Shown here piece after piece: positions 2,081 to 43,250 of a stretch of 64,000 nt of DNA. The position numbers and the translations under genes were made by a program. The notes beneath the pieces were generated by a model. The model made no database searches, was not told the origin of the DNA, and saw nothing but the letters and a program-made list of their open reading frames with translations. The stretch lies in contig NW_026854825.1 in assembly GCF_026571515.1 (NCBI RefSeq), forward strand, positions 62,001-126,000, given 5' to 3'. The stretch's first letter is position 1; each line of letters opens with the position of its first letter. This DNA comes from Ruditapes philippinarum (lineage: Eukaryota).

Positions 2081-5000
2081 TCAGAAATCTAACTTGTGGA
2101 TTTGCTTCAGCATCTGAAAGCCGACGTTCAATTTGAAAGACAAACATTTCAAACTTTCATCACCCTCAATCTTTAAGTCCCCAGCAAACAACATTGACAG
2201 CGCTTTATGCCTAATATCAGTATGAGTCGATTCAATTAAGCAAATAATTGACCCACTATCTCCCCTCTTCGAAAATACCTCATCAGAAGTGCCTCTGTTT
2301 GTGACAGTTGTCCGACTGCTTTCAAGATTTCGGACATAAACTATGGTATTTCTAGGCACAACATTTCCGTGCGCGGTTTCATCAGTGTTAAGACCGCAAC
2401 ATTGCATATCTTCTAGCGCTTTTATATTTGCACCATTCAAATGTATACGGTTATCTTCACGTGCATAAATTGTTACAGTTGGTGTGCATTGATCATTACT
2501 CTCAGCTGTTATGATTGCTGATTCTTGAAAACTAATATCGTCTGGTGTGTTTTCACCATGGTTATATGGCAATCTGACCGTTTTGGCTATTTCTGGCATT
2601 TTTTCGTCAAAGGCATCTCTGTCATTTGACATAATTTGGTCTTCACGATCTGGTAAGGATGATTGGGTTTGAGGCGATGATTGATCATTTATACAAGTAA
2701 TAGGGTCAAACGTTTCCTGAAAGTCAGCTGGAAGGTCAGGTTGAATGTCTATCATAATCAAATAATCTTCAGTTTCCACTTCAAATATACTGTAGTCAAC
2801 TGAAACGATAAATCCTTTAGTGAAACCACTTGCTGCTCCATACTTAAAAGCAGGGATTCCAACAATCATTTTCGGGTACTCGTCAGAAACAGTGGCCATA
2901 GTTATACACTCATTACATTCCTTCAACGTTTGTTTGCATAGCTCTTGTGACTTCGGAATCACTTCCAAAGCAGCAATATCTACATGTTTAAGTTCACTAT
3001 TTTGACGATTTATTACTTTTGGAGAGGAACTGAATGGACATGGGCCATCTTTATCTATGAACGTTTTTTCACCAACGACGTGGGCACATGTTAGACCATG
3101 GACTTTTCCATCCTTTGATATTATAAATCCACCAAGTGTCCCGAATTTCCCTTTATCTCGTTGAAATAGACGATCCCCTGGTTCAAAGGAAAGACCCATT
3201 TCCTTATGTTTCTTTTCAATGTACCTCATTACAAACTGCTCCTTAAAATCATGTTTGTGCATCTGTAAAGATATGTCTGACCTCAATTGTTTTAATTTGT
3301 TTGATAGTTTTTCTTGTGGTAAATCTGCCAGTGATGTGAGATGAATATCGTCAGTTTCAGCGACAATTGCATTGTTTTCATCTTGTTTGACATCATCACT
3401 TTTGCTTACCAAAACTGCATCTTTATCCACATGAATCTCTAGCTGGCCATAAACGGTACCTAGGCCATAAACCCCTTTTAGACTGAAAACAAAATTAATA
3501 AAAGTGCATATTCTGTTTGTCGAATAGTACAGGCAAATGTTTTCTTTCAGACTTATTTTTTATTTGAAAGATTCGGTATGTTGTTACCTCACTTAAGTGA
3601 AATTTTATATATGTATAATATTATGCTTCTAAAACAATTTTCAAACATCGAAGAATATGTAAATTATGTACTGCAAATATTTGTCAATATTATATGTAAT
3701 CATAAAAATATATGCATTCGTTTCTTATTGAAAGATTTGACTTAGACTTTATGGAAAATAAATTTCTAATTACCTCCCTTTATTAACATGAAATGTAAAT
3801 TTCGGTAATATCTATACAAATAATGCTTTTTGGAACTTACAATATTGATAGATTTTCATTTGAGCACATTCTTATGATATAAAACCATAAAAATGTGTTA
3901 CAGGATCTTTAAGGATTTAAATGAAGCTATCAATTATATGCTACGGAAAACATAGGAATGATGATATGATTGACACATGTTTAAACATCTGGTAATGGAG
4001 AAATCACTCAATGAGCAATGAACTTAAATGCCTATTATGCATCAGAAATTCTTTTATTTCTCAAAAGATTCTCATCTTTTGTCCTGTATAGTTTTCAAAC
4101 AGTTACTCATTATCAAATTATCTGAACCATCCTTTGCTTCTGTCTGTTACCTCTTGTTAATTAGTATATTTATAATGATTTAGCGTTTTGCATAGAAGTC
4201 AAAGTACTTCTTTGCTAACATTTTATTTCTTATGTGGCAAATAATTTCACAATCAGCACTACTTCCTTCAAGCGATTAACATATAGCATGTTCTTAATCC
4301 TTTATTTAAACATTATGAAACTCATGTTCGCCCTTTCTAAAGAAGGAAAGATTAATTCATTTCTGAGGCATAATGTGCCTGTTAAGCTAATAAGTAAAAA
4401 GTGAAGTCTCAATTCGATTTATTCTGTTCATCAGAGATAATGAAAAGTGAAGCATCTGTCACGCCCCCCATAGTACCGGTTCAAGTGTTACTCAATCTTC
4501 AACATAATAAAAAGAATCGATGATGCCAAAGAACCAGAAAAAAATATCAAGATTTTAGTTAAGTAAAACTTTATTTATTCCAGAATGCACTAGAAATTAA
4601 TATAGAATGAATGCTTCTCAATGATGGTCCGGGCAACGTCAAAAGTTATATTAAATTGTATGCCTCAGAGATGCGCCTTATAACAAAGATTTTGTGTACT
4701 TATGACTACATTTGTATGCATAGTATATAGTATACAAATGTTCTTAATTAATCTTAAATCTTATAATTTAAGTTTTCTAAGAGTGTTATACTTACTTTAA
4801 TAAATCTTGCCTAAGTTCTTTAGGTATTGATTGCTGTTGCTCAGCAAATGACACTAAATTTGCAACATTTAGTTGTTTCAAATATCCATGAGCTTCAAAC
4901 GCCATTTTTCGAATGATAGTTGATAGCTTTTGCATTGATTGGAGCTTTTTCTCAACATTTGCTGTGACAGGCTCTACGTCTGATTTAAAAGCATAATAAA

Positions 5001-6736
5001 GAAAATCAAACTTTTTTGTCTTTTTTGAGTATACGGTACCATCGAGTAATGCTTCATACACATACTCAACCAATGATCTAATATGATGTTGCGTGTTTTT
5101 TGAGATTGCGTTTGATAGTGCTTCTTCTAATTGCACTTCATACAGTAGACCGTTACAAATCCATACTTGCAGACCATATTTCCTTGCAAAAAGGTTGACA
5201 ACAGAACAGCGAGCCACATGACACAAAGACTTCAGAAGACGATCATATATCTCGGTGCACGCCTTTTCCTTTTCATCTGTATTTATTGTAACTTCAACAT
5301 AAGCTCTTGCATTTCGCAAGAAGTCTTTTAGAGAACAAACAACCGATTCTGTCTCAAACACATGAATAGGTTCCAAACAAACGTCAACGTTTATTGGTTC
5401 AAATCGTTTCAGATGGTAATATATATTAATGAATCCACTAGCAAGATATTTTTCCAGTGTATCAGAAATAGTTGTTTTCAGGTCGCAGGCAATTGGGTTA
5501 ATAAAAATACTATCTTGCTCATTGAAATACTTTTCCAAATCACCATAAAGTGCAGCAAAAACAGAATCTTGAAATCTAGTGATATCTTCATTTGTTAAAA
5601 CTCTGGTCGTAGCACAGCAGATGTACACAAAGATCTTACGCTCTGCCTTTTTGGCATCAAAGGTTAAAGCTTTGAATTTGGATCTTATTTCCTAGAATTA
5701 AACAGAAAAAACAAATCACTTGACTTTACTTTGTTGTGAAAATAATATACTTTGTACATATGCATGATTGTATGAAAATAAGGAACCTTTTACCAAGTTT
5801 AACTACTAAGAAGAATTTTACAATTTTTAATAAAATAATCGTATTCGACAAAATTAAATTGTATCGCTAGATATACCTGAAAGTATCTCTCAGTTAAATG
5901 TTCTAGGTCTATATGAAGTATGACAATTCCAAGTCTATGTACAGGGGAATCTGGTAACTTCGAAACAGGATTGAATACGAGATCATCTTTATCTATGTCC
6001 CTCTTCCCGATCACTGATAGTTTAAGCCCACCTTCGAATTCATGTTTTGTTTGTTCAATTTCTCTCATCAACTTGTCATCATGGAAACATTTTGGTAGGG
6101 CACCTGGATGATACAGAAATACTAGGACTGATATAAACATAATAGGAGAGGGAAGTACCTCGAAAAGTATTAATAAAAACAAACAAACAAACAAACAATA
6201 AATAAATACAATGAAAAAATAGATACATAAATAAGTTGAAAAGTGTGACTTGGTTGGATTAAATATCTTCTTTTTTATTTCTTGGGGTGGGGGTGTATAC
6301 GCCAGAGGTCATATGGAGACTTTACTGGTTGAGGAAGACCTTACATTCTTAAATGAGGGATTTATCTTTATAAATTCATGTACATATGACATATAGGATA
6401 ATATGCTTAAAGTATGATGATCTTTCAACTTGAATGTTGTTATACAAATCATAACATAAAATGTTCAATTATGCATGATTTTAGGAAAAACCATCGTCGG
6501 ATACCCACGGTTGATTTACATGTAACATGACATAACATGTAATCAGTATTAATGGTTAGGCCGTGGATAAAAACTTAAATACGTGTATAATATTGGCCCA
6601 AATTATTCTTACCTGTCACTCTGGTGAATCTTGGTACGAGATCTTTATACCGCCGATGAAAGTGGTATACACGAGGGTACACATCGAAATTACCGAACAC
6701 GTGAACGTACTCCTGTATAGGTATTAAGACACTCAT
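2081..6736 (-). CDS. Array copy 1: pseudo-P-loop/helical domain + NAL1-like trypsin-fold serine protease, 882 aa; complement(join(2081..3482,4796..5691,5877..6103,6613..6736))
   Basis: All introns GT-AG; exon lengths 124+227+896+1402=2649 nt keep one frame (phases 1,0,2). Starts MSVLIPIQEY..YPRVYHFHRRYKD. Last exon begins LKGVYGLGTVYGQLEIHV and carries GTLGG, LTCAHVV (His), VDIAAL (Asp), FKYGAASGFTKG, FSKRGDSGS (Ser). An acceptor at 6761 and a donor near 6985 suggest an upstream non-coding exon. Confidence 0.88.
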
Positions 6737-7659: not shown

Positions 7660-8554
7660 TCATATAATTATATTCACAGGGCATCTCTCGAGTTTGGCTA
7701 TGTTTTCGTATGCTCGTATTTTGGGCTGTATCTTACGATGTTGAATTCCCCCTCTGTTTGTTTTGTTACAACCTCGTGATATTCTAAATATCGGCGATTT
7801 TGACTGTGTTTTGTCCATTTTCACCAACTCTAAGTCAACGATGTTCCTGGCCTGTTCTTCATGCAAAATGCAAGCCGAGCGTGTAAAGTAACGTATCTAG
7901 AAGCATTTGTGGCGTTTCTGTTTCCAGAATGCGTTTATTCCACAGTTCATTCTCATGTTCTTCACTTATAATAGCAGTGTTTCTCCGTTGCATACCAAGC
8001 CCTTGTTTGGATAGCTGCTTCATTTTTGCATCAAAAATACGCCTAAGTCCATCAAAAGCGGCATCATCTAGAAAGTTGATAAATCTACCTTGCTATCGAA
8101 GATGGTGTTGTATGAAGTACCCCAGTGTCTCGTTCAGCACTTCGCTACTCATATTTATGAGATTGTTGTTTGGCACAAAAGAGTCTGTGTTTTTATTTCT
8201 GTTCTTCTGCCATAAGTCAAACATGTTAACTGCCCATTTTGATTTCTTTTCTGTCTTACTAGACAATCCACTTTTGACAAGGTTGTCTAAATCACTTTGT
8301 TTCAGTGGCACTGGAAACCTTGCTGGCTCATTTTGTTCGATGAGCTGAGTTGCTTTCAAAAGTTCTTCGTCCGAAATGTCTGAAAATAGGTCGCTTTTCA
8401 AATCAAACGACGGCTGGAGCTCTGTTCTTTGCTTATTGTCAGCCGATTCTACCATGTCTAATACTTCACTTAAAATAAAATCGGATTCTATAGGGCTCAA
8501 ACATCCGTTTTCTTTAGACTGTGTTATTAAAATACTATCATCTGAAACAGACAT
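7660..8554 (-). mobile_element. Fossil Crypton-type tyrosine-recombinase element (DUF3504/ZMYM-KCTD1-QRICH1-related), with frameshifts and stops
   Basis: ORF 8093..8554 has RF..LDNLV..KTEKKSKWAVNMFDLWQKNRN..LNETLGYFI. Another frame continues FDAKMKQLSKQGLG..IISEEHENELW..PQMLLDTLLYTLGLHFA*RTGQEHR*LR, then KTNRGG..RCPV. These match motifs I recognise from Crypton recombinases. Confidence 0.8.
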
Positions 8555-8816
8555 TATGGCTGCTTATAATTTCTAATCGTTTTTTTTTCTTTCTTTCTTT
8601 TTTAAATTCAGAACAACTTAATGATGGCAACTTTGTGTTACTTATGAATATTGTCACAACATGTGAGAGAATAAACAAATTTCGTCGCTTTGCGCCTCGA
8701 TCTGTTCATTCTCTCACATAATGGACAGTTTTTGGAGTTTCTCCATAACATAAAAATGTATGAATCAATAATTCTGACAAAAAAAAAAAAAAAAAAAAAA
8801 GACGAACAACCCCTCC

Positions 8817-8961
8817 NNNNNNNNNNNNNNNNNNNNNNNNNNNNNNNNNNNNNNNNNNNNNNNNNNNNNNNNNNNNNNNNNNNNNNNNNNNNNNNNNNNN
8901 NNNNNNNNNNNNNNNNNNNNNNNNNNNNNNNNNNNNNNNNNNNNNNNNNNNNNNNNNNNNN
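8817..8961. other. Assembly gap (145 N)
   Basis: Run of N characters. Confidence 1.
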
Positions 8962-9169: not shown

Positions 9170-11585
9170 GAAGGTCATATTTAACATGGCCAAAATTCCA
9201 TAACTGTACATTAAAGGACAACACAGTTAGACACTTTGTCAAAATCTAGGCCAGCTGATATCAAAGTTCATTTTACATCTTAATCTGTGCACATGGTTCA
9301 AATTTCATAGCTGCACATAAAAGGACAAGAAAGTAGGTCACATCATCAAAATCTAGGTAACCTGATATCAAATGTTTTATTTTGAAACTAAAACTGTGCA
9401 CATAGTCCTAATTTTATGGCTGCACATCAAACTACAAGAAAGTAGGTCACTTGGGCAAGGCAAAATTTTGACCCAAGGGTTTAATTTAAAAAAATCTTTA
9501 TACAGGTCCACCAAACAACATTTCATGACCTGTGGTTGATATTATAAAGCACACATCAAAGCTCTAAGCCTTAAACCTTCAGACAAGAAGATTTTTTAAC
9601 ATTTTATTATATGTACATGGTGAAAATCAATGACCCCAGGGCTATAATTTAAACAATCTTGGTAAAGGTTCACTACACAAAGTCTCATGCCAAATATCTA
9701 ACCGCAAGCCTTTGTCAATTCAACCAGTTTTTACTATATACATATAAGAAAAACTATCGCCTCTGGGGCAGGGCAAATTAAACACTAGGGGCAAAAATTA
9801 AACCACTTTGGTAGAGGACCCATAGATGATATTATAAAATATCAACGCACTTGTACCTTTCAGACAAGAAGATTTTTTAATGTTTTACTATATGTACAAA
9901 GTGACTGAAAATCAATGACCCCGGAGACGGGCCAATTTTGAACACAGACCTATAATTTGAACAATCTTAGTAGAGATTCACTACACAATGTTTCATGAAA
10001 AATATCTAACCTCTAGCCGCTGTCAATTTCGAGAAGATGATTTTTAATTTCTATATCCCCGAAAGAATTTCGGGCATATTATGTTAAACCCCCTGGCGTC
10101 CGTCCGTCCGTTAGCAATTTGGTTTCCAGAGCATCACTTAAGTTCATTTTAGCCCACAATATTCAAACTTCATAGGATGATTGTCCATATTGGGTAGAAG
10201 ACCCCTATTGATTTTGGGGTCACAAGGTCAAAGGTCAAGGTCACTATTACCTTAAAACTGAAAACAGTTTCTGGAGCATAACTTAAGTTCCATTCGGCCT
10301 ATAATATTTAAACTTCATAGGATGATTGTCCATATTGGGTAGAAGACCTCTGTTGATTTTGGGATCACAAGGTCAAAGGTCAAGATCACTATTACCTTAA
10401 AACTGAAAACACTTTCCGCTCAATTACTTAAGTGTTAATCAACCTATAGCTGTAAAATTTTATAGGATGAACAGCCAAGTCCAATGCATGACCCCTATAG
10501 ATTTTAGGGTCATAAGGTCAAAGGTCAGGGTCACAATGATCTTTACAATGAAAATAGTGGTTTCTGGAGCATAACTTAAGTTCCATTTGGCCCACAGTGT
10601 TCAAACTTCATAGGATGATTGTCAATATTGGGTAGAAGACCCCTATTGATTTTGGGGTCACAAGGTCAAAGGTCAATATCAAATGACCTTAATATTGTTA
10701 ACAGTTTTACAACTGTCAAACTTCATAGGATGATCACTTATATTGAGTACATTAATTATGTGCCCTAAAAATTTTCTTATATTATGTTATACCCCTGGCG
10801 TCTTTCGTCCATCCGTTGTTGCTTTTTTACTTATCAAGATAACAACTTCATGGTGGTGCTTTGGAAACAGCAACTGTATATATATATATATATGAAGGCG
10901 GTAATACTTTATTTAATTCCCATGTCTTACAAATGCTTCATCCTTACGAAAAAAAACACAACAACAGTACACTTTCGGGCATATAATGCTCCGCCTAGAG
11001 GTGCTCCTGTTGACTATATACATATAAGGGAAGCCTATGACCCCCGGGGGCGGGGCTAATTTTGATGCTAGAGACAAAATTTGAACAACATCGGTAGAGT
11101 ACCTATAGATGATATCATATACCAACTATCAAAGCTCTAAGCCGTGTACATTCAGACAAGAAGGTATTTTATGGTTTTACTATATGTAAATATTGTGAAA
11201 ATCCATGACCCCCGGGGCGGGGCGAGTTTTGACCCAAAGGCTATCATTGAACAATCTTGGTAGAGGTCTACCAGACAAGGTCTGAATGCAAAATATCTAT
11301 GTTACAGGCCTTGTGGGTCTTTAAAAGAAGATCTTTAATATTTAAACTTATTATTTCTTTTGGTTGCCATGGCAACCAGATTTCTGCATGGATTAAATTC
11401 TTTGAACAACTCTGGAAGCCCTTTACCCAAGTATCAATCCTGCAAAGTTTGGTTGAAATTGGACAAGTGGTTTTACACAAGAATTTTTTTTACGTTCACT
11501 ATATTATCTATATCACACACACACGCACGCACGCAGACGAATCGCTATATACCCCGAATCGCAGATGCTGCGGTGGCATAAAACA
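9170..11585 (+). mobile_element. Non-autonomous Helentron/HINE-like element with ~165 bp satellite-like central units, interrupted by a nested element
   Basis: Repeated GGGGCGGGGC..AATTTTGACCC..ATTTGAACAATCTTGGTAGAGG..CAGACAAGAAGATTTTT units at ~9460-10050 and ~11030-11340. Ends in an (ACGC)n microsatellite, short hairpin and ATAAA. Boundaries approximate. Confidence 0.65.
10052..10810 (-). mobile_element. Nested HINE-like element with ~146 bp tandem units (CACAAGGTCAAAGGTCAAGGTCAC)
   Basis: End with CCCGAAA..TTTCGGG hairpin followed by (CGTC)n; TCATAGGATGA..GACCCCTATTGATTTTGGGGTCACAAGGTCAAAGGTCAA units near 10167, 10312, 10460 and 10605. Confidence 0.7.
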
Positions 11586-13322: not shown

Positions 13323-16300
13323 TCAATCTGATGGGAAATGAAGTTGTAAATTTCCTGCAGCATTCAGACTATCAATACCTTCACGCAACAAAAACGACGT
13401 GCAATAGTTGTAATCTGTAAACCCAAATTCACCTTCAGCAAGCATGGATACTGCTGTAACATGTTGGGCACCTACATCAGACATACAGATTATTGACCCA
13501 CTATCTCCTTCGCAAGCATAACTGTTGTCTTCACAACCCGGCATTGTTTCTATAAGCAACAGCTGATGTGTTACATCCCTATTCGCTCTGCTGTAGTCTG
13601 AAGAACACACTAGTCCGTCTGTGAACTGCGAACCAGCCCCGTGTTTGTACACCCTTCGATCACTTTCAATAAGTTCTTGAGCGAAACCCATATACAGCTC
13701 TGTCCTCATATAGTTTCCGTCTTCGTCTTTTAAATTTGTTCTGCAACGCATTTTATCTTTTTCATGTATCACTTTTACCGCAGCAATATCAATTAATGTG
13801 CCACGTTCTGGGGGGATTTTTGTCTCTGGTTGGCTAACTGCAAAAACACGCCTATTTCCATCGAATACATTATGAATCGCATCATGTTCTGCATGGACAA
13901 CATGTGCACATGTAAGTACATATATTTCACCGTCTTCATTTCGGACAAGCCCACCAAGAGTGCCCCGAAATCTAAAATCATCTGTAGGACATTCGCATCC
14001 AATACTTGTACCCGTGTCTAAACAGAATGGTTGGGGCTTCTTCAGAACGATATCTACTCTGTATGGTTTGAGGAATTTGAACTTCTGGATTATTTCACAA
14101 ATCTGCTCCTTTATTTCTTTCATCTTCTGGATACTAAGGTTCTCTAAATGAATTTCGACTCTGCCATAAATTGTTCCGATTCCATACACACCGTCAACTC
14201 TGCAATAATCAAATAGTCAAATATTGATTGGATGTTGTGATTTAGTATGGTTTATTATAATGAGCAATAAAATGTTACAAATCAGTTTTGGCAAAATGTC
14301 TTGGCTTCAACGAATAAACATAAGGACTTATTTAGCACGATTGTGTTTACATTTTCCAAATAAATATTTTTACTTTAAAACAGCATTCGTGTGTGAAATA
14401 AGAACATACCCAAAAATTGCTTCCTTTAGTTCTCGGGGAATTTCCGTCTGACTGGGTATCAAATCATAACCGTGTTTCATTTTTGAGCTTTTTATGTAGC
14501 CATCGATCTCAAACAACATTTTCCTCATAGTGACTGCAAGACGTCTTGTAGAATTCAGATGATCTTCGAAAGTTTGGAACTCACCCTTGATATCATCTCG
14601 TACAACGTATGCAATGAAAGCAAAATTTTTGCCAGGAAAATAATAATGCTTGTGTCCGGCCTTTGTAGCATTCAGCATATCCTTGCACGGGGTTTCCATC
14701 TTTGATAAGTGATATCGTGCGTTTCTTGAAACACTTTCTTTCATTTTGTCGTCAAACTCGAACTGATGGGCAAGTTTGTTGCACTCATCTTGTGATAAGC
14801 AATATTTGCCAGCCAGCGGTGCCATAACAGCACATCTGATGACTTCCATAAATCTTGTAAGCGTAATTTCAATGAATGACATCTGATCATTATTAGACTC
14901 AAGCATATCGACAAACCCTAAACCGTTCTTCAAAAAACCTTGCATTGCGGTTATAAGCTGATCTGATTCAATTATGTCGAATTCACTTGCATCGAAATAT
15001 CTATCACCAATGATGTCAAGTAGATGTATCATCAATCCATTGAAGCCTTCCATTAATTCTCTCTCTATGATATCAGATATTCTTCTACTTATCTCCGAAC
15101 TATCTTTCACGTCAACTATCATGATGTTTTCATCATCTGTGCTAATGTCGGGTGTTTCTTTTTGTGCTAACAACTTGATTTTTTCACAAAAAGATCTTTT
15201 ACGTTTGCTTTCGATACCTTTTGTAGCACCATTTGTTTCGCAGACAACAAGCGGTCCAAGAACAGATGACCGGAAGCTCTTAGCTTGTGATTCCAAATAT
15301 TTGAAAGTGTCTTGTACTTTCTGCAATTGAAGAAGATCAGATACATTATAAACCACCTTCACCATGCAATACCTTTACATTGATAAATTATCAATTTATA
15401 AGCATTAAAGTTGAAAATAGAGAAGGTTTTGAAAATATAAGGAAATTTTGGATTTCAAGGTTTTTTTTCAATTACTAACATTTTAACGCGTTTCACAATG
15501 AATCATTTAAGTGTTTAAACGTTAGACATCCAACATTTTGTTACAAGAGGTTCACTTTGCTTATTCATTGGAGCATGAAATGCTTGACTATAACATATTA
15601 AAGCAGAATGCCTGCAGTTTTAAGCTTCAGTTTCTTGAACATTTTTGAAACTGTTTTTACAAATGAAATATTGTGAAGAGAACAAATAAAGTCAATTCAC
15701 ATTGGAAGCGGCACTTGCAATACATAAATTATACATCAATAAAAAGAAAGTCAAAATATGCAATATAACCTTTATTGCGTTAGTCACGCAGTAGAAATGA
15801 TATTATGGTGATATATAAGTCTACTGCATGATCAGCTCTTACATGCTTATAACATGTAACTTATAATTTGAATTTTGAATCTTTTAACGTTTCTTAAAAT
15901 ATTTTTTCTCAAGTTTGATTTTTTTTAAATTTGTTTGTTCATCTGTAGGCACGCATCTTTTAAAAACAACACCATTGATAAAGCGTCCTATTAATTAATT
16001 AATTAATTAATTAACGAGGACTTAAGTAAAATGCTCTACACAGAAACAACTATCACATTAAATATCAATCAATCACCTGCAAACTTCCATCTGTAAAGTC
16101 TTTGATCTTTTCATAACAAATAACAACCGTAAACTGATTCTTCTGCTGTAGGTCTGAGCTTAACTTTATCGGAGAAACAGTGGAACCTCGTGCACGATCA
16201 CCTTTTAATGATTGAGTGGAAATGACCAATTTTTCGGCATTTACATTCTCACGCCCTATGACAACCAGTCGAAGATCATTTTCTATCTTGCATGATCTAT

Positions 16301-17127
16301 CCGTTATGTTCTCGTTCAATTTTGGTGAATATGGCCATTTACCTGAAAACAATATCCTTCATGTCACAAAGATTTTGTTGTTATCTGTTAAGTTTTATTG
16401 CATAGTTAACAATTAACTTAAGAATGACTTTTTCAAACAGGTCTTTTTTAAAATGTCAACAATTATAAAGTGTGTTTACCAAATGCAATATGAGACAGTC
16501 ATATACATGTATTATTCTAAAAAGCATATATAACTTATTGAAAATAAAAAGCCTTTCGCAAAAATAACAATTCATTACAAAAGTTATGCAGACACTCTCT
16601 GTCTGGCAATAGGCGAAGATAGCTAAGTTTACACTTAGAGTATCAAGACAATGATACTGTAGGCAAAACCGTATCATACACTTTGACTGTAAAATGTGAG
16701 GTTTCATGTAAACTTTTTTAAAAGTTTTAACTGAAATATAAATGTGTTTGCTTCAAATTCTACCGAATTTTATCTTGTCACACAATATGCTCCAAACACA
16801 TTATAACATTAATATCCTAAACAAAAAACTAATATTTTTGAGCATCTAAAGTAAGATTTTTATTCTTAAACTGAAGTACATATTTGGTAGCAAAAGGAAC
16901 AATAAAATATGAAGACTATTTCCATTTGTACGTATAAAAGTCTGACCGTGAATAAACAGAAGCCTAAAATGAAAAGAATCAATTTTTTAGTAACAAATTT
17001 AAAAGAAACAATTCATACTTGTTACTTTCTGTAATCTTGCGTGGACGTCCTTGAATCGCTTTTGGTAGTGATGTGCCCGAGGATATGCCTTCCACGAGCT
17101 CAGCTCGTGCGAATATGCGCCTATCAT
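13323..17127 (-). CDS. Array copy 2: pseudo-P-loop/helical domain + NAL1-like serine protease, 720 aa; complement(join(13323..14199,14410..15320,16077..16342,17019..17127))
   Basis: GT-AG introns; 109+266+911+877=2163 nt, phases 1,0,2. Exon 1 reads MIGAYSHELSSWKAYPRAHHYQKRFKD (too short for the ORF track). Protease motifs GTLGG, LTCAHVV, IDIAAV, YKHGAGSQFTDG, YACEGDSGS. Confidence 0.9.
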
Positions 17128-20199: not shown

Positions 20200-22990
20200 C
20201 ATAATCAAAGGGCTGCAAGCTCTGTGGTATTTTCTGATCTTTGCAATCTAAATCGTACTGTATATCTGTATTTGTTTTCCTGTATAAGTTTATTTTTGGC
20301 GTCCTCGGCGCGGCGCCTCTTTTGGAGTGAGAAAGGGCGACAGCAAACTTCTCTAGCCTTTTAGTCGGACATAATAAAAGCCGTTCATTCAGACCAGTAT
20401 GAGGGTGCTTGATTACCTGCGGTCTGGAGACCACAGGGTATTGGTACGCATTTAACTTTTAAGGCATGGAGGAGCACGTGACCTGTTTTAGGTACATGGA
20501 GGAGCATGTGATCTGTAAATCGTACATGATTGGTTAATTGACCTTTTCGGAAACCTGGATAAATACCGTTTGCTGGTACGTTACGGATAATCCTCTAGGG
20601 AATAAGACACCTAATTAAGAACAAAAAACTATTACGTGATATTTTCTATAATTATGTTACCGTTTAAGGTGGAAAAACTTGAATGATGTGTTTGAAAAAT
20701 TATCAATGTTTCTTTAATATGTATCTCAAAAATGTTACAAACAATAAATTGTTTATACTGAAAATCTACAAAATTAAAATATTCGTAGTGGCATCTGCCA
20801 TAAATATAATACTTGTGTGTTTACTTTATTTTTTTTTTTTTGCTCGGAATTATCATAAAATGGTAGGCCTATTTAATTATTTTCTTAAAAAAGAATGTTT
20901 TATGTTCGATCTTCTCCGGTCATCAACGGTCACCAGTTTTCCAAAGACCTTCTTCTATATTAATCGATTACTGTCAAATATATTCCTGATACAAACGTTT
21001 ATTTATCCTCGCCCCCCCCCCCTGAAAAATAGTTAATTGAAATATATTTTTATCATTAAAAACGTTGCCCCGCAGGAAACCATTTTACTTGTTATTAATT
21101 AAAAATGCAATGTCGCGATATATACAATGAATAGCGAACTGGAGAATTTCGCAATGCAAACATTTTCAAATGAAATAACCTTTTTCCGTCAATAAATTGC
21201 GCTCTTCGGGTATTTTTATTTATCATTTTGTAGTACACAGTGGGTTATTATGGTTCATGTATCCGAAAGCTGAATAGAATGATGAGTTGGTGACCTATAT
21301 ATTCCAAAAATCTATTTATAGAGGGATGTTATTCCTATCGGTAATTCCCGGTCTCTCCTGGTCTATTTTTGACCGGAATTTTACTAGTGACCGGCGAATA
21401 GTACCACACGTTTATTGTCCGGTCTCTCCCGGTTTTCGAGTAGATGTTTGATATCGTTACAGAACAGAACAAATATTTACAGTTATATAAGTTTTTTTTT
21501 CAAAATGAATGTTTGTCACTTAGTTTGGGTTTACAATAATTAATAAACACAGATCAACTCTCAAATTTATTGATTATTATTATACATAAACATACAATTC
21601 GAAAAAAAAAACCAACAACAACAATAACATGTTTTATAAAACATGATAAAACACTGATTACGTTTGTATCAGATAAAAAACAATAAATATGTACAATAAT
21701 TGAGAGAAAAAAGGTACATTTTTATGGTATTAATATGACACTATCAACTTTGAAACATTTTATTTAATTTGTTATTCGTGTTTAGTAAAGATACCGAGGA
21801 ATTATTCAAAGTTACAAATTAGATTTTATGAATTATTCAATTGATTGATAATTTAAAAAATGATAAAGAAAAATACAAATGTACATGTAAATGTTTTAAG
21901 AATAAACAATATTATATATTAAAAGTTTAACCATAATTTACTGACTTTTTCCAGTTAAGTTTTTACTTAATATAATCGTCGGTCAATATGACAATTGAAT
22001 TTTTAAAAATAGTAGTAAACGTAAAAACTCAGTATTTAAATAGCACATAAAACACACAAAAAAGAAAGAAAACAATTTTCATAAAATCTGTATTTTTTTT
22101 ATTACAATTATTGTATAATAAACAATTATGCTCAACATGATCAACATGGTAATGTAACCAGTGTCATATTGTTTAGTAAAGTGTGAACAGATACCTTTAG
22201 GGGGTCTTCGCTAATAGCGATAACATAATAAGGGACAGGTGTGGTGTTGATCATGCATTACACATATGGATTATAAATGATTGTATACATGTATATCCGT
22301 TGCTAAAAAAATCATTTATGTTCATTTTTTATGATAGCCACACTTTATCCTTGCATATCGTGCCTATTTCCAACAAAGACACTAAAAAAAGAATTAAAAA
22401 AAAGTGTTGACTCGACTGGGATTTGAACTCCAGACCTCTCACACGTGAAACGAGCGCGTTACCCCTGCACCACGGAGAAGTTATGACAACAGTGGCTGAT
22501 TAAAATCAAGTGATTCGTAACTTATAATTTCCATTGCATTTCGGGTTAGGGTAATTTCGAGGTATTTTGTTCAGGGTAAACCTGTTGTTTAAAATTGAAG
22601 TAAATAATTTAGCAAAAATCTTCTCGCCCAAACAGTCCAACATGTAGAAACTATATATTCAACAACTCGACAGTCAGATTTATTTGTGTAGTATTCGGTC
22701 ATCGATATCGCTAAAAATAGCATTTTCATTGATAAAAATCATATTCACCCGCGTAATTTGTGAGTGTGCATTTATTGACAATTTTATAAGCCAACGCTAC
22801 TTTTAAAGTTTGAATGTGTAGTAATTTGTTGGACACTTGTAACAAAAAAATGTTCTTTTTTTTAAATTGCTGGTTTTTAAGCAGTTTTGAGTGAGAACTA
22901 CATTGCGTTGTTAGGACTGTTGGGAAATATTGTGTTAGACCGTGGATGTTAGCTATGTATTTATCTGATCTTGCGATCAGAAAATACAAA
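20200..22990 (+). mobile_element. Dispersed repeat family A, copy 1, split: head 20200-20290 and body ~22300-22990 with ~2 kb unrelated sequence between; contains a tRNA-like segment at 22413-22475 (-)
   Basis: Head AATCAAAGGGCTGCAAGCTCTGTG..TTTTCTGATCTTTGCAATCTA and body ..GATTTGAAC..CGAGCGCGTTACCCCTGCACCACGGAGA..CGCCCAAACAGTCC..ACTCGACAGTCAGAT match 42336-43250 and 52330-53250. Confidence 0.7.
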
Positions 22991-23398: not shown

Positions 23399-26300
23399 TC
23401 AGTTAATCCCTGTCGGCATCGAAAGTTCTACTCCATTTGAATGTTGTTTGAAAACTTGAAAAGCAGTGCTCAAAAGGAACGATAGACACAGCGATGAATC
23501 CAATCCTTCTACATTGAATCGTCCAGCACTCGTCATAGTTACAGCCTCAATGATTTTATCGTCCCCCTCGAATGTAGAAATACAGTTGATTGACCCACTG
23601 TCTCCCTCCTTCGCATAAAATTCACCGTCACAAGACTTAGTGTCAATAAGCACTATGTAGCTTTTGGAATCTTGCCCATCAAACATGCTATAGTCAGAAG
23701 AGCAAACGATACCTTCGGTAAAGCCTGTCATTGCACCATACTTGTAAACGTATTTTCCGACAAGATCACTTGGACAAGCTGTAGATAGTTTTGATGTTCT
23801 TAAAATACCATCATCATCTTTTAGTAGTTGCATACACCTCTGGCGTACATCATCACATACTGATATTGCAGCGAAGTCAATCCATGAGAGCTTTGTGCTA
23901 CCAAAACGTACAGTCATCTCCGGTGAGCTCTTTCCAAACATATGCTGTTGGAAAGAATCATCTTTAATATAGACGTCATGCTCACCTGCTGAACCCTGAA
24001 CAACATGTGCGCATGTCAATCCAAACAACTGGTTATCATCATTACTTGCAAACCCTCCCAATGTCCCTTTTCGGAAATTACCTGTGTCTGGTGAAATACT
24101 TTCAAGTGTATTCCCGGTTTCACACTGCCACATAACTAAATCTACAGGCTCTTTTAATACTTCTCTCAACCGATATGGTCGGTGAATGTTCATATTTCTG
24201 AAAACCTCTGTAATACCATTCTTTACATCGTTAAGACGTGTCTCTGTTGTTTTCTTTAAATGGATTTCAAACTCACCATATACGGTTCCAACTCCAAACA
24301 CCCCATCAAGTCTGGAAAAGGATTAAGGAACCAGCTTGTTAAGTAAATGATATTCAGCAAATGATAATATTCAATACAAAAACACACCCAAACTGTGAGA
24401 AAATCATACGCTGGACTGTTTTACTTTTCCAAATTATTTACATATCGTTTAAAAGATATTTAAAATACAAAAAATTTAGAAACCAATATTGCTTTACATA
24501 TTAATGTTACTAAGAGTGTTGAATAAGAATTCAATGCCTCGAGTCAAGGCAACATTACAAAAAGATATCTAAAAAGGAAATAAGTTCTATCTAAAGTAAA
24601 GAACTAGAAGGAGAATTAAGTATGATACTAACGTTAACAGTTTTTTTCTTAATTCTGCCGGAATGGGTGTTGTTTCAGTATGTTTTCGTGAGATATCGCC
24701 TTCTCGGACAATTGATTGTTTGATATAACCTCTTATCTCAAACAACATCTTTTTCATAATAGTTACGCCATGCTGGACAGAAACCAGTTCTTTTTCAAAA
24801 AGTGCTGTTTGTTCCTTGATATCATCCTTTAATGGGTGTGCGATGAACAGAAACTTTCTGATAGGAAAAATGTACTGTTTATGTTTAATTTCTGCTTTTG
24901 AGCAAAACTCCTCAATTTTTTTGAGATGGTACCGGGTATTTCTTGAAATACTGCTTTTCAATTTCTGTTCCAGGTTCAATTCATGGGCTAGCAAGTGGCA
25001 TGCATCTTGAGGCAAGCTATATTTGAGAGATACAATGGCAACGATAGAGCAACGTATCACCTTGACCAGAGAGTCTAAGACGATTTCAATAAAGTCATCG
25101 TCCTTGTGCATGTCCCTATCATCGATGATCCCCCAAACATTCCTTAGAAACCCCCGTACAGCACAGACGAATTGTTCATTCTCTAATGTGTCAATATATT
25201 TCAAATTTGGACCTGATCTCTCTGTCGCAACCTGGCTCAAATGGTCTTCAATTTTCATGAATTTGGTTACAAGTTTTGATTCTATTAAAAGAGATATTTT
25301 GCTGCCGAGCAATCCGACATTTGGCCCTAAGATAATTCTGTCTGAAGATACTTCAATACCGTACAGTTTTCTAATTTCAAAGATCATTTCATTGCAAAAT
25401 AGTCTCACTTCTTCATCAGATTTGGGTGCGTTTGTTTTACAAACAAGGAAAAGGTTTTCTACTAAATCAAGTTTTGCTCTATTTGAAGACGCCATGAAGT
25501 GACCGAGAGTATCAACAACATCCTGAAATAATATATTTCTGTAAACATATTGTGCTAGAGTATGTTATTTTTTGAAAACAAAATTTCAATAACACTGAAG
25601 GAGAAATCGTTCGTAAGTTTAAGTTTATATATCTTGATACCGAGTTGCTTCTTCTCTTATACCTAGTCATTGATATTTTCCACAGAAACAACTTTATTGC
25701 CATATTACTTAACCTAATACATACAGAAAGTAAACATGTTGTCTAAAAGTGTAGCAGTTAATCACTTTGCGTATTGAAAATTGCTATCCACTATTCATCT
25801 ATTTCATCTTTGGATGACACTAGATTACTTGCCCATAATAGTCCTTTGAAAAGTTCTAATATACCGACAAGATAATGTATTCAACAATTTAAAGAGAAAG
25901 TTACCTGAAGCCTCTGTGTACCATCGTCTTTTGTATAACACACTGCTACCGTCATTGCAGCATGTCCTCTTTCTGACAACTGAGAATTGATCGACTGCCG
26001 TCTAAATGGTTCATCTGTTACTATGATATCATTTTTATTTAAATCGTCCTGTCCAATGACAAGTATTTGCAGGGCTGTCTCAAGGTTTGCACACAATTCT
26101 CCGAGCTCATTCTCCAGTTTTAAACTTCTAAACAGATCTGGATATGGTGATTTATCTGGAAATAGTACATTGACAATGTTTTAGAAAAAGTGAATGCTTG
26201 AATATTTACTTTCTAGTGAGCATTTAAATAGAAAATATTTTCGCATAAAATGTAACAATCAACACTCATTAAAGAATATTCTTTGTACGTAAATAAATAA

Positions 26301-31326: not shown

Positions 31327-34300
31327 TCAATTTGTTTTAACGTTTGAACGTTTTATCTGTCTGACTCTAAACAAATAATTTAAGTTGTATTCTTTCATCA
31401 TTGATTGCAGACGTTTTATCAGAGATGATGTATCCGGAACCGATTCTTGTAAATGAACTTCAATTACATCATATATTGTTCCTATACCATAAACGCCCTC
31501 AATTCTGCAACAAAAACCAAAGAACATATATTAAATAGCTAAAGCGTATGAGGAACAAGGTAACAATTGAATTTATTTACAGAATAATAAATTTCAAATA
31601 ATATTTCTAAGTTATATTTCGGTATATTGATAATAAACGAACCTACATTTTTAACATGTAAGTCTTTTAATTGATATTGAAATACTTTGAAAAATAAAAT
31701 TTGCCAAGATGCGATTTAAAAATATAAACTATTAAACTTTTTAACCATTGTTGCAAGACAAATATAATTACAATTTTTTAGGACATAACACTTATTTTGC
31801 TTACTTTAGAACACTACGTCGCAAACTGTCAGGAATCCTTATACTTGGTTGTTTCGGTGAAAAATCAAAATGTTCCACGCTAGTTTGTTTCAAATATCCA
31901 TCTATTTCATATTCCATTTTACACATTACAGTTTGAATTCTTTTCATGGAGTTTATTTCCATCTCTGTTGTGGACGATACACTCTCGAAATCCCTTTGTA
32001 AAGACGTCACTATAATTTTCAAACGATTTGATGAGCCAAAGTATCTACTCAAATATTTTAAGTGATGATCATTTACAACTTTATTACATATGCGCTCCAG
32101 GTAACCTATAATAAAGCGTGTTCTATCTGACATTGATTCAACTAGTTTGCTTTCAAATTTATCAACCTTGCAAATTCTTGTACAAAACCAGGTTGGTAAA
32201 GCGTGCTTAAATGCAAAGAAACTTATGAGAGAACATCTGACGTGACGAGCCAAATAATGAGTCAGTGAAGAAGGATTCTCATCACTTTGCTCAATTTGGA
32301 AGTCTAGCAATAAAACAGGATTTTGAAGAATACAAGAAAGAACATTATTCAAAGTCACGAAAGATGCATCCGATATGCTTAAAGTTTGCCTGGTTTGCTT
32401 ATCTTTTTTTACAAAGAACCCAAGAAATATTCGAATTCTGACAAAAGCTTCAATAATCCATTGTTCGTATATATCAGAAACCCGTTGTTTAATGTTCATT
32501 TCTTTTGATGAAATGATGACATTTTCTGATGCTAGTTCGTAGCCAAGCAGCGACTTCATTTTCCGTATAATATTTTCGCGACATTTTGTTATTTCTTTAT
32601 CAGTGGTCTCGAGGTTTACTTTACATGCCAGAATTAGCAAATTCAATGGAAAAGATTCGTAAAATCTAGTAGATTTGAAATGTTTTACTGTCTGTTCTAA
32701 CTCCTGCAAGAAATAGATTAACTGATAAGTTTAACATTGAATGTGAAAGAGAAAGAAACATTTTTATCATAAGACAAATTTATGGATCAAGAAATGATTG
32801 TAAATTTAAAAAATCATTGAAAACGTTTTCAGTGATTAAATATGATAAATACTGATGTTTATTTAATTAAATCAATAAAAAGTAAAGGATATAAAGAATA
32901 TGTTGCAAACAATATTAAACGTTTAAAAAAATCTTTATGTTTTTTTTCCAAATAAATAATTTTAAGCCCTTTTGTACTTTTCATGTTGTCTTTAACCTTT
33001 TCCCTTATATAAGCGTGTTTCGACGGCTTTTTGCCCACCCCCCCCCCCTTTTTGAGGCCTCAAACAGTGAAAAAATGCCCTATTTAGGCCCCAAACACTG
33101 TTTTTCGTTTGAGAAATGTTGTTAAAAAAAGTGACCACTTTTTCGGCGCCGTCCCCCATCCAAATGTTACATCAGGGGGTTGCCAGAAGGGGGATGTGCC
33201 CCCTTCTGTTTGGGGGGTTTGAAGGGGGGGGGCGGAGTCCCCCTCATCGCCAAGAAAATTTTGGACATGTGACAGGCTAAAAATGGCCTCAGGTCGATCT
33301 TAGGGTAACTAGTAACCGACGCTGAAAAGCCTTTTACTCTATCTTAATTCATTGAGAAGTTGCAGCACTTTGAAATCAGTTTTGATGGAAAAAAAACAAT
33401 GCAAAATAGTGATTTTTGGCAATTTTGAGACGTCCCCCCGTTGCCATGGTAACAGGAAATTTACGATTGAGCATGCTGTTACAGAGGCTATGGTCTAGTC
33501 AACATTTGTGCCAAGTTTCATCAGTATTGAAGCATTTTTCATAGTTTCATAGCAGTTTGAACTTGTTACAGGAGGCTTTTCAATGAAAACGGCCATTTTT
33601 CGCAATATGCTCATGGGGTAAAAGGTTAATTAAAAAAGTAAAAAATGTCAAAAAACAACAATTTTTCACCAAAATTAGGTGTTAGGGCACGTGTTAACAT
33701 GGAAAAACTAGTTTTATGGTAATTCCAAGGTTTTTCATCATTTTTTTGTTAATTAAAAAAATAAAAAATGTCAAAAAATAACAATTTTTCACCAAAATTA
33801 GGTGTTAGGGCATGTGTTAACATGGAATAACTAATTTTATGGTAATTCAAAGGTTTTTCATCATTTTTTGTTAACCTTTTCCCTTATATAAGCGTGTTTC
33901 GACGGCTTTTTGCTCCCCCCCCCCCTTTTTTGAGGCCTCAAACAGTGAAAAAATGCCCTATTTAGGCCCAAACACTGTTTTTCGTTTGGTTTGAGAAATG
34001 TTGTTAAAAAAAGTGACCACTTTTTCGGCGCCGTCCCCCATCCAAATGTTACATCAGGGGGTTGCCAGAAGGGGGATGTGCCCCCTTCTGTTTGGGGGGT
34101 TTGAAGGGGGGGCGGAGTCCCCCTCATCGCCAAGAAAATTTTGGACATGTGACAGGCTAAAAATGGCCTCAGGTCGATCTTAGGGTAACTAGTAACCGAC
34201 GCTGAAAAACCTTTTACTCTATCTCAATTCATTGAGAAGTTGCAGCACTTTGAAATCAGTTTTGATGGAAAAAACAATGCAAAATAGTGATTTTGAGCAA

Positions 34301-37300
34301 TTTTGAGACGTCCCCCCGTTGCCATTGTAACAGGAAATTTACGATTGAGCATGCTGTTACAGAGGCTATGGTCTAGTCAACATTTGTGCCAAGTTTCATC
34401 AGCATTGAAGCATTTTTCATAGTTTCATAGCAGTTTGAACTTGTTACAGGAGGCTTTTCAATGAAAAAGGCCATTTTTCGCAATATGCTCATGGGGTAAA
34501 AGGTTAATAAGACTCTAAGCTTTATTTTCAAACAACAAGGACGGCAGACGTAAAACATACACGTTGAAAAATCTTATAGAAAAATGAAATACCTCATAGT
34601 GGTCACCCTCTGCTGACACCAACTCAAAGTAACATACAACAATGCTCGGAGAAGGAGGGCCAGTTTCATCAGTTTTCTTTACTGTTAAAGGTGTTTTCGT
34701 ATTTATCGATATAAACAGTTCATCTTCAAATACATCGCGCTTTCCAATTACGATTATGTTAAAATAATTCTTTTTCTGCAGCACATCGTTCACATGTTTT
34801 GGTACTGACAGAAGATCATCATCATGCACATCATCGGGAAGCTTTCCTGTAGGAAGAAATAGATATTTTGATCCGAAAATCCAACACACAATTACAAAAA
34901 GCACCAAAAAACCCCAAGCAATTATCATAGTATTGCAAGCAATCCATAAGTCCCCTACCGGTTAGAACCCCAGCAACATTCTGATGGGCCATTGGCCATT
35001 CAATTTTACCAGTGAATGAATGACATGAATGAACTTAAATCTTTTGAGTTCTACGTTTCCCTGCCTAGGAAGGAAATTATGTTGATACAAACTTGTCATA
35101 TTATTACGATGTTACAATTTTAAAGTAAATCCTATAAGGAATGAAGAAGTTGGAGTAAAAAATACCAATTTCTCGAAAATAATCTAAGTTCAAGGGGGAC
35201 ATAATTCTGGAAATAGTCTTGCCAGAGTATTTAACCTTCTCAAAACTGTTGAATGATAAAAGGAAAGTTATTTAACATATATATGAAGTTTGAGGTAGAT
35301 ACATTAGCAAATAAAGAAGTTATTTAAAACAGACAACATATTTTTCATAAAAAATCTAAGTTCAAGGGAGGTAATACTGATAATTTTTGTGCTAGAGTTG
35401 TAAACCTTGTCACATATGATGTGGTTGATGACCAGAAACTTATATTTAAAGTTTGAAGTAAACACCTTAAGAAATAAAGAACTTATAGTGAAAAAACTGA
35501 AAAATTTCAATCAGAAATCTTGAAATTCAGGCTATTTGCTGCCATAGCAACCAGAATTTTCAACATAGGAAGAAAAGAAAAAGATGTGCATAATCTCCAG
35601 ACTGCCATCTACCCATATTTCAAGTTTCATAAAAAATATTTTAGTATACATTGAGTTATCACTGGATCCAGTTAATGTGTAAAATTTGCCATATTTTCAG
35701 ACTATTTGTTGCCATAGCAACCAGAATTTTTAACATAGGAAGAAAAAAAGATGTGCATAATCTCCAGACTGCCATCTACCCATATTTCATGTTTCATGAA
35801 AATATTTTTAGTATACTTTGAGTTATCACTGGATCCAGTTTATGTGTTAAATTTGCAATATTTTCAGACTATTTGTTGCCATAGCAACCAGAATTTTCAA
35901 CATAGGAAGAAAAGAAAAAGATGTACATAATCTCCAGACTGCCATCTACCCATATTTCAAGTTTCATAAAAATATTTTTAGTACTTTTGCGTTTTATTGG
36001 ATCCAGTTTATGTGTTAAATTTGTCATATTTTCAGACTATTTGTTGCCATAGCAACCAGAATTTTCAACATAGGAACAAAAGAAAAAGACGTGCATAATC
36101 TCCATACTGCCATCTATTCATATATCATTTAGAGGTAATTAATTAACTTATATCACTGGAAAAATAGCACTGCATATTAAAAAGGTACAATTTATAAACT
36201 GCATATGAATTTCTCGACTTGAAAATTGCTTACTCACCCGATACAAGTTTTGGTTATAAAAATCTAGAACAAAATACGCGGATACATTTTGACGAGTACA
36301 ATACCCTAGCTAGTGCAGACTCCCCTCAGAATTGTATGCTATGATTTATAATCTTACAAACTTTTTGCAAAAGATAAAATAAAGGAATCCTTGTCATAAT
36401 TTAAATTCAAGTTTTTAAAATTCATACAAATTTTACACTAATAATTTGTCATAATCTGATAATAAATTTATTTTTTTCCGCTTATCCCCGGAAATCTATG
36501 TCATGTTCATAAATATTCAAAGGTTATCACAGAAACTCTAGCTATATCTAGGGTACATAAATTGTGAGCTACCAGTTGATATATACCTCGTAAAACTTAA
36601 GTAGCCTTAAATTATACATTCATTGATTTACGTAGACTTAAGAAATATGGTTTATGATCGAGACTGGCATACTGTAAACACTAAGCACTGTGTGTATAGA
36701 TGTATTTTTAAATTTTATAGATGTCGTGCAATCCTTGACGTTCATTATGATTGACCATTCTATTGAAGAACTTCATTGCATTATTTTTGGTGAATATACG
36801 ATGTGATGCAAGTCACTTCATTTTCATATTCGCTATTTGGCGCTTGGATTCGATGTGGTCACAATTTATCAATTTTAAATGACACGATTTTCTTGTATCC
36901 GATTATCTGTTCAGATACAATTATAATTATATGTTTATGCCAGGCAATAAGTTCTTATATGATGTGTGGCGCTTAGATGAGAGTTTGTTTCAAATGACCC
37001 GATATGTTACGATCCGATAATCCGTTCAGATACCATCATATGCTTTTCAGTAGGATTATCCAGGTCGTGTTCACAATTCCTCACGAGCAAACACGATCAT
37101 CGAGTTCACGTGACCCGATTTGAAATGGTCGTATTAAACAGGCAACACTATGATATGTTTATCACGAGATGATGAGTAATGTTGCTAAAGCAACTATCTC
37201 TCTCACAATCAGGATTGAGAACAAGATTTGTGCAACGAGTATTTATATAACCCGACTGACCATTTAAGGTAATTGGACTTTGTAACAGTTTTAGATGTGA

Positions 37301-42335: not shown

Positions 42336-43250
42336 AAAATCAAAGGGCTGCAAGCTCTGTGATATTTTCTGATCTTTGCAATCTAGATCTTATTGTATAT
42401 CTGTATGTATTTTCCTGTAAAAGTTATTGTTATATACTATAATTCATCTAACTGGGCTATATACTATAATTCATCTAACTGGGCACCGAGATGCAGCGAC
42501 TGCGTTTAGATTTTTTACTATGTATAACAGTTTAAGTATGATACATACGGAATTTTGCATGGCTAGAGTTGCATCAAAAAAATCATTTACGTTCATTTTC
42601 TATGACAGCCACACTTTATATTTGCATATCGTGGCTACTTCTTTAAAAAAGACACTTAAAAAATAGGATTCTTGACAGGAATTTGAACCCAGGACGTCTC
42701 ACACCCTAAACGAGCGCGTTACCCCTGCACCACGGAGAGGTTTTACGAAGAAGCCAAAATAAGATCATATACGTAACTCTTAATTTAGAATCTCCATTTC
42801 GGGTTTGTACTCCTTATTAATTTTGAGCTATTTTGTTCATGATAAACCTGTTTTTTAACACTGATGTAAATAGTTAAGCGAAAATCTTCTCGCCAAAACA
42901 GTCCGACATGTATATATTCCACTACTCGACAGTCAGATGTATTTGTGTTATGTACAACTACGCTCTGCAGTACTCGGTCATCGACATAGCTAAAATAGCA
43001 TTCATTGATGAAAATGATATTCATCCGCGTAATTTGTGATTCTGCGTTTATTGACATTTCTATAAGCCAACGCTACGTTTAAACTTTGAATGCATTGTAA
43101 TTTGTTGGTTAATTGTAACAAAATAAAAATATTTCTTTCTTTTACATCCCTAGTTTTAAGCTGTTTTGAGAACTACTTGTTGTTAGGTTTGACGTGAAAA
43201 TTCTGCGTGATAGCATTGAATTTCCTGATCTACGATCAGAAAATACATAA
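42336..43250 (+). mobile_element. Dispersed repeat family A, copy 2 (most contiguous, ~900 bp)
   Basis: Same head and body as 20200/22300 and 52330; reverse tRNA-like segment at ~42675-42735. Confidence 0.75.

Follow-up and report, generated by a model that had tools for sequence, protein, structure and literature searches.

The window analysed here, a stretch of 64,000 nucleotides (nt) from Ruditapes philippinarum (positions 62,001 to 126,000 of contig NW_026854825.1; C3312 in our contig list), is AT-rich and intron-containing. Its minus strand carries a tandem array in which five paralogous genes are complete and a sixth is represented by its last exon, as traced by tblastn with the exons of copy 1 and by open frames; at least ten paralogs are present in the 1.4-Gb genome. 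The array genes encode products of about 730–880 amino acids (aa), and alignments of the five copies gave low identities, 22–30% in exon 3 and 25–32% in exon 2. Coordinates are collected in Table 1.

The splice sites of copy 1 were first taken from the sequence (GT..AG on the minus strand). The joints 6103/6613, 5877/5691 and 4796/3482 were found in assembled RNA contigs (three runs from three studies), and the contig depth tracked the exons of copy 1 and fell in introns 1 and 2, while intron 3 contains a high-depth repeat. Thus, the gene model of copy 1 is supported by transcripts and the gene is expressed. Copy 1 is transcribed and spliced as assumed in an earlier note made from the sequence of this stretch. 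That note had proposed a minimised, catalytically dead dynamin-like GTPase fold for the span 5560–6103, which in copy 1 takes in exon 2, all of intron 2 and 132 nt at the start of exon 3.

The encoded protein has three parts. Residues ~1–195 are best read, according to the structural models described below, as an N-terminal strand, a ‘YPR’ helix and a five-stranded α/β domain with small-GTPase topology; residues ~196–426 are predicted to form an all-helical region; and residues ~412–730 are a module of the type known from rice NARROW LEAF 1 (NAL1), that is, a β-β-α-β unit resembling an ATP-binding domain (ABD) and, after it, a serine protease of chymotrypsin fold whose His/Asp/Ser triad is intact. 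As a whole, the protein is best explained as a nucleotide-free pseudoGTPase scaffold with a helical region that regulates or targets an intracellular NAL1-type protease, a reading towards which the balance tips slightly.

All strings quoted in the earlier note were present in the translations, both those around the hydrophobic strand of exon 2 (LKLSVIGKRDIDKDDLV in copy 1 exon 2, then LRLVVIGRENVNAEKLV, LQILVIGQDDLNKNDII, FNIIVIGKRDVFEDELF and LGVYVIGKNNIDKDDLV) and the strands further along, IVILHI / TVVICY / TVAVCY and LFLVCKTN / LVVCETN / LILACKVN. In the exon-2 alignment V-I-G accounts for three of only four invariant columns. Since these residues are invariant at an exon-2 identity as low as 25–32%, the hhVIG strand (h, hydrophobic) is a real conserved feature and not a product of chance.

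Window exons were searched singly, and public homologues were used for full-length folds and scans. AlphaFold2 models were obtained for the Mercenaria protein P0003 (730 aa, a near relative of copy 3; 34-sequence alignment), with a predicted local distance difference test score (pLDDT) of 85.3 and a predicted template modelling score of 0.82, and for P0049 (a 299-aa N-terminal fragment; 33-sequence alignment), with a pLDDT of 86.3. The two models agree in the order of elements, and in both the compact α/β domain begins at the hhVIG strand. Judged by element order, this domain appears minimised: helix α1 measures only 4–8 residues in either model, a disordered linker stands in the place of switch I and β2, one C-terminal β-α unit seems to be lacking and an extra N-terminal strand is present.

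Foldseek comparison of the N-terminal model with the PDB gave no match at E ≤ 1e-3. Its top-scoring rows, at E about 0.01, were fragments of TIM barrels, followed further down by SMG9, GIMAP7, GIMAP2, MglA and flavodoxin-like proteins. VIA-align, which is independent of Foldseek and was run against 48,161 PDB representatives, returned rows of two kinds, short helical bundles fitting just the two long helices, and α/β matches. All of the latter (20/20) were GTPase G domains, among them those of RagD, Asgard Rag-like GTPases, RagC, Gtr, G-alpha subunits, an HflX-like protein and Hbs1; TIR, CheY, flavodoxin, Rossmann, AAA+ and kinase-type P-loop folds were absent from these α/β matches, and a TIR or flavodoxin-like fold was rejected for that reason. 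The best G-domain fits covered model residues ~66–210 with a root-mean-square deviation (rmsd) of 3.1–4.3 Å over 119–135 residues, and the superpositions span the matched domains, beginning at their first strand and ending with their last helix. When the full 730-aa model was used in VIA-align, proteases filled the list and nothing new appeared for the N-terminus. In a feature search of the ESM Atlas with residues 1–200, MMR_HSR1/AIG1 clusters made up 8 of the 10 rows shown (0.85–0.87), a degree of similarity that the tool rates as a lead only.

Profile methods gave a different kind of result. Exons 1–3, scanned one by one, matched no Pfam family, and scans of 10 full-length members singly and of the 33 alignment members at E ≤ 1 returned protease families only and no GTPase family. 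PDB profile searches, with the whole family or with the protease-less members alone, found no GTPase either; NAL1 was the sole match, on the protease part. The same genome carries at least 50 matches to AIG1/GIMAP-type GTPases, many in tandem clusters (contigs C3526, C8208, C13630, C785, C6140 and others) in which the G domain lies in a single exon and has an intact GKxGxGKS P-loop, and 12 of these single-exon domains were assembled into a comparison set. Using hhalign, the N-terminal sub-alignment paired with them collinearly (score 16.8, P about 0.08), with VIG on the P-loop strand, D..G on DTPG and FIVCET...EE on the GIMAP box. As 11 of 60 block-shuffled controls also reached a score of 16.8, this match was dropped as evidence. 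A homologue search with the protease part of P0003, aimed at NAL1-like proteases fused to real GTPases, recovered 8 close family members only.

Altogether, the uniform G-domain matches starting at hhVIG, the coverage of the whole domain and the agreement of the two models make a G-domain-like topology the best reading of the fold. Several points limit it: the VIA-align Z scores lie below 8, a range common for unrelated models, the topology was judged from the order of elements and from superpositions rather than from sheet order, and the link to G domains has no sequence support. On the models, we consider it reasonably probable, if by no means assured, that we are dealing with a genuine G domain in degenerate form. 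The fold proposed in the earlier note therefore stands in part, as the placement of hhVIG as β1 and a G-domain-like fold fit the models; its call for structure prediction and fold search led to an α/β domain with G-domain matches in VIA-align and to the null result in Foldseek. The dynamin-specific assignment was not established and the motif-level claims failed, as described below.

The N-terminal domain might instead be a lineage-specific three-layer α/β domain, a generic sandwich of parallel β-α-β units, that resembles a G domain by convergence and does not descend from GTPases. Such an origin would be in line with the missing sequence support and the low Z scores, and we regard it as possible but doubtful, because no other fold class occurred among the 20 α/β matches, because the superpositions take in entire G domains, and because the language-model feature search pointed independently to G-domain clusters.

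Dynamins come into question through the helices that flank the domain. In VIA-align, rows of the dynamin family were among the top scorers because their fit extends to the helix that precedes the G-like domain and to those that follow it, and LeoA, BDLP-type bacterial dynamins, mitofusin-2 and EHD4 likewise hold a G-like domain between an N-terminal helix and C-terminal helices. The N-terminal region could be a degenerate dynamin-superfamily (BDLP/LeoA/mitofusin-like) module, whose flanking helices would act as neck and stalk and oligomerise or bind membranes. However, these alignments have an rmsd of 7–12 Å and are tied with rows of small GTPases and other G proteins (Rag, Roc, G-alpha, EF-Tu). 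Dynamin-type G domains are large, about 300 aa, whereas the G-like domain of the clam proteins, with about 145 aa, reaches half that size and lacks dynamin motifs. Neither Dynamin_N nor any other GTPase profile was matched in the scans of the 10 full-length and 33 alignment members, the ESM Atlas search with the helical region gave no usable match, and no hydrophobic paddle, transmembrane segment or other membrane-binding element is evident. A specific BDLP/mitofusin-like pseudo-G domain with stalk, as put forward in the earlier note, is thus not established, and we hold a dynamin origin to be quite unlikely.

Conservation of GTPase motifs was assessed in a wider family alignment of 34 homologues, in which motif columns were counted over up to 33–34 members. 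The family consensus at the pseudo-P-loop is h-h-V-h-G-x-x-x-[LI]-x-x-[ED]-[DN]-h-h-V, with the Gly after the hhVIG strand kept in 26/33 homologues. The five window copies read GKRDIDKD, GRENVNAE, GQDDLNKN, GKRDVFED and GKNNIDKD at the Walker A site, KRDIDKDD in copy 1 exon 2 being the degenerate P-loop position. A GxxxxGK[S/T] motif after β1 occurs in none of the 33 aligned homologues and, at this place, in none of 91 proteins. The earlier note had seen a surviving Walker Lys in three of the copies, but across the 33 homologues this position is occupied mainly by L (7), S (4), V (4), T (3) and R (3); as it is not conserved in the wider family, the Lys of the three window copies is no surviving catalytic residue. 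The would-be Ser/Thr position is mostly Glu (16/32).

The remaining motifs fared similarly. No consistent G3 motif (DxxG) was found at the end of β3 in the family alignment. About half of the members have a D..G pair (D 15/29, G 13/28) between the second strand, equivalent to β3, and α2; it lies 5–6 residues past the hydrophobic strand, at the start of α2, and could at most be a displaced and weak relic of G3. The strand LFLVCKTN, taken for a G4-like strand in the earlier note, is the third of four strands counted from hhVIG in both models, and by this order of elements it more likely corresponds to β4. Nothing resembling NKxD follows at the next strand (RIILG...), where the G4 motif would come, and [NT]KxD occurs in scattered, non-aligned strings only and nowhere aligned across members. 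At the beginning of the helix that comes after the last strand, an ‘IS..LE’ motif is almost fully conserved (S in 31/34, E in 34/34). Over the family, mean pairwise identity is 22% in the N-terminal region, 24% in the helical region and 31% in the protease. The most conserved N-terminal element is the exon-1 helix W.VYPRV.YF..R..DL..RF (mean top-residue frequency 0.59); the pseudo-P-loop belongs to the less conserved segments (0.35).

With the P-loop lost and without consistent G3 or G4 motifs, the domain would be a pseudoGTPase of the class i type, and on these sequence grounds it probably binds no nucleotide. It is very unlikely that the domain holds a nucleotide or other phosphate ligand by non-canonical contacts and acts as a switch that puts the protease under ligand control: the ABD of NAL1 does bind ATP through loops that lack Walker motifs (PMC12012508), and the Gly after β1 and the D..G pair are partly kept, but the loop after β1 has no conserved Lys, Arg, Ser or Thr (best kept are E in 16/32, D/N in 17/32 and L/I in 26/32), and the poorly conserved pseudo-P-loop and the very short α1 of both models also speak against it. 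Small and medium TRAFAC GTPases (Roc of LRRK1/2, Rag/Gtr, G-alpha, EF-Tu, Toc34, GIMAP/AIG1) are the best structural matches to the clam domain. In contrast to them, it has no Walker A motif, no consistent DxxG or NKxD and no profile similarity, the hhalign match to AIG1 being within noise.

With its β-β-α-β, ABD-like unit and chymotrypsin-fold domain, the C-terminal part resembles NAL1 (PDB 7Y77, 8PMM, 8HAU) more than other proteases, although sequence identity to NAL1 is only ~16%. The catalytic motifs TCAHVV, D(I/L/F)AA and GDSG(S/A), for His, Asp and Ser, were read in exon 4 of copies 1, 2, 3, 5 and 6. Instead of the 88-aa N-terminal domain of NAL1, the clam proteins have ~410 aa of pseudo-G domain and helices, and they come from bivalves, not plants. 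Yeast Ssy5 (peptidase S64), an endoprotease of a signalling pathway that is inhibited by its large prodomain, is intracellular and, like the clam proteins, has a large non-catalytic N-terminal region before its chymotrypsin-fold domain. The N-terminal regions are unlike, however, and matches to Peptidase_S64 (best E 1.7e-4) stayed below the Pfam cut-off and covered part of the catalytic domain. Read by eye, the N-termini of the clam proteins are not signal-peptide-like; a secreted protease was rejected on this ground, and the protein is probably intracellular or cytosolic. Long acidic and Ser-Pro-rich insertions lie in the protease, before GDSG, in copy 1 (2280–2745, minus) and in the partial copy 6 (62901–63998, minus), and the apparent Mercenaria orthologue of copy 1, P0015 (917 aa), also has an insertion in the protease domain.

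A profile of exon 3 matched only 79 proteins among 1.84 billion cluster representatives. All matches with a recorded source organism were from heteroconch bivalves and are named ‘uncharacterized’ or ‘hypothetical’; the genera of the family are Mercenaria, Ruditapes, Mya, Mactra and Dreissena, and the freshwater mussels Sinanodonta and Potamilus. In exon 3, copy 1 is 44% identical to P0015, and copy 4 is 40% identical to the protease-less Mercenaria protein P0011 (490 aa). These identities between genera exceed those between paralogs in the window, so that the array arose before the two genera diverged, and its members are evolving rapidly. Copy 4 (31330–37906, minus) ends soon after the ABD-like unit begins and has no protease. 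Further members of ~470–520 aa without protease are found in the database (P0012, P0023, P0026, P0028, P0030). In view of these and of the likeness of copy 4 to P0011, the truncated form appears to be conserved and not a recent accident.

In Table 1, the elements of copy 1 exon 2 were placed by homology to the P0003 and P0049 models and their G-domain superpositions.

Table 1. Exons of the five complete genes (window coordinates) and structural elements of the P0003 model (residue numbers)
Feature	Position	Strand	Content or basis
Copy 1 exon 1, coding part	6613-6736	minus	Met, N-terminal strand, start of conserved ‘YPRV.YF..R..DL..RF’ helix
Copy 1 exon 2	5877-6103	minus	helix, strand LKLSVIG (putative β1 equivalent), KRDIDKDD, variable linker, strand IVILHI (putative β3 equivalent)
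Copy 1 exon 3	4796-5691	minus	α2, strand IFVYICCA (putative β4 equivalent), α3, short β5, ‘IS..LE’ helix, ~230-aa all-helical region
Copy 1 exon 4	2084-3482	minus	NAL1-like ABD-like module (GVYGLGTVYGQLEIH...), serine protease (TCAHVV, DIAA, GDSGS), long acidic insertion
Copy 2 exon 2 (LRLVVIGRENVNAEKLV ... FTVVICY)	16071-16340	minus	open frames, exon-2 alignment
Copy 2 exon 3, approximate borders	14412-15320	minus	tblastn, open frames, exon-3 alignment
Copy 3 exon 2 (LQILVIGQDDLNKNDII ... MTVAVCY)	25905-26165	minus	open frames, exon-2 alignment
Copy 3 exon 3, approximate borders	24632-25522	minus	tblastn, open frames, exon-3 alignment
Copy 4 exon 2 (FNIIVIGKRDVFEDELF ... SIVVCY)	34590-34865	minus	open frames, exon-2 alignment
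Copy 4 exon 3	31804-32703	minus	tblastn, open frames, exon-3 alignment; copy without protease
Copy 5 exon 2 (LGVYVIGKNNIDKDDLV ... FTVVLLHI)	55660-55944	minus	open frames, exon-2 alignment
Copy 5 exon 3, approximate borders	49106-50011	minus	tblastn, open frames, exon-3 alignment
Strand	P0003 6-12		AlphaFold2 model
Long helix, the YPR helix	P0003 19-40		AlphaFold2 model
Helix	P0003 51-65		AlphaFold2 model
hhVIG strand	P0003 68-74		AlphaFold2 model
Short helix, then disordered linker	P0003 88-95		AlphaFold2 model
Strand	P0003 110-117		AlphaFold2 model
Helix	P0003 123-140		AlphaFold2 model
Strand (‘G4-like’ in the earlier note)	P0003 151-156		AlphaFold2 model
Helix	P0003 163-181		AlphaFold2 model
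Short strand	P0003 190-193		AlphaFold2 model
Helix running into all-helical region	P0003 197-223		AlphaFold2 model; helices to ~426, one of 49 residues
β-β-α-β unit	P0003 431-480		AlphaFold2 model
Two-barrel protease	P0003 490-730		AlphaFold2 model

The introns and spacers of the array hold other elements as well. Inside intron 3 of copy 1, RNA contigs and raw RNA reads covered 3610–3931 at least 100-fold deeper than the exons and showed numerous variants and loose ends; this segment is a highly repeated, transcribed element. Broken frames of the DUF3504 type (PF12012, E 5e-7 on 7862–8023) lie in several frames between copies 1 and 2 (7660–8554, minus). DUF3504 is associated with Crypton-type elements, so the region is probably a decayed mobile element or a fragment of a domesticated gene. 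A run of N at ~8800–8950, an assembly gap or masked stretch, comes after a poly-A tract. The repeat families D8, D11, D12, D15, D18 and D20 (20203–22862, 42338–43191, 52330–53267) recur within or next to the copies, ~20.3 and ~9.9 kb apart; one repeat segment (22385–22482) and its copies have a tRNA-like 3' part, which suggests a tRNA-derived short interspersed element, and no intact tRNA was detected by ARAGORN anywhere in the window. Long introns and spacers of the array also contain satellite-like tandem repeats, whose periods are about 139, 145 and 167 nt, and a tandem duplication of ~880 nt that is 98–99% identical (40067–41014, 10122–10704, 35526–36127, 33103–34508).

How a pseudo-G domain might serve a protease can be considered from what is known of pseudoGTPases and of NAL1. 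Class i pseudoGTPases such as CENP-M, AAGAB and p190RhoGAP work by protein binding and not by catalysis (PMC4080450, PMC5593906, PMC12490416). The clam domain has no detectable sequence relation to CENP-M, to the N-terminal domain of AAGAB or to pG1/pG2 of p190RhoGAP; unlike them it is fused to a protease, and its predicted structure is smaller, with a rudimentary α1 and an extra N-terminal strand and helix. In NAL1, the 88-aa N-terminal domain swaps a strand and thereby stacks trimers into a hexameric cage (PMC12012508). In the clam proteins the pseudo-G domain and helices may take the place of this small oligomerisation domain, and the two regions would then form a nucleotide-independent scaffold for protein-protein contacts and govern how the protease assembles, is activated or chooses its substrates.

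The tandem expansion of the array, the fast divergence of the N-terminal region and the conserved protease-less member fit a diversifying role in recognition or regulation, perhaps in immunity or another conflict, although this is speculation. At its furthest, a fast-evolving, nucleotide-free GTPase-fold sensor with a helical stalk would gate a NAL1-type cage protease, with protease-less paralogs such as copy 4 and P0011 as regulators or decoys. Such a module for signalling or defence, hitherto unrecognised in animals and comparable in bivalves to immune switches that are based on proteases, seems unlikely to us as a complete scheme; its building blocks are familiar from other settings, plants (NAL1) and the GTPase families of immunity.

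PseudoGTPases and NAL1 proteases are each known already. As far as our searches show, the fusion of the two, a NAL1 module in animals and this family confined to bivalves are undescribed: literature searches on NAL1, pseudoGTPases and bivalve GTPase expansions, which were not aimed at the family itself, gave no description of it, and database names leave its members uncharacterized. If the fold assignment is true, fusion to a protease would be a new context for pseudoGTPases, and the NAL1 module, so far studied solely in plants as a yield gene, would turn out to occur in animals too, joined there to a regulatory N-terminus of a very different kind. Expressed, tandemly expanded, fast-evolving and unannotated, the family is confined to one clade of bivalves that includes farmed clams.
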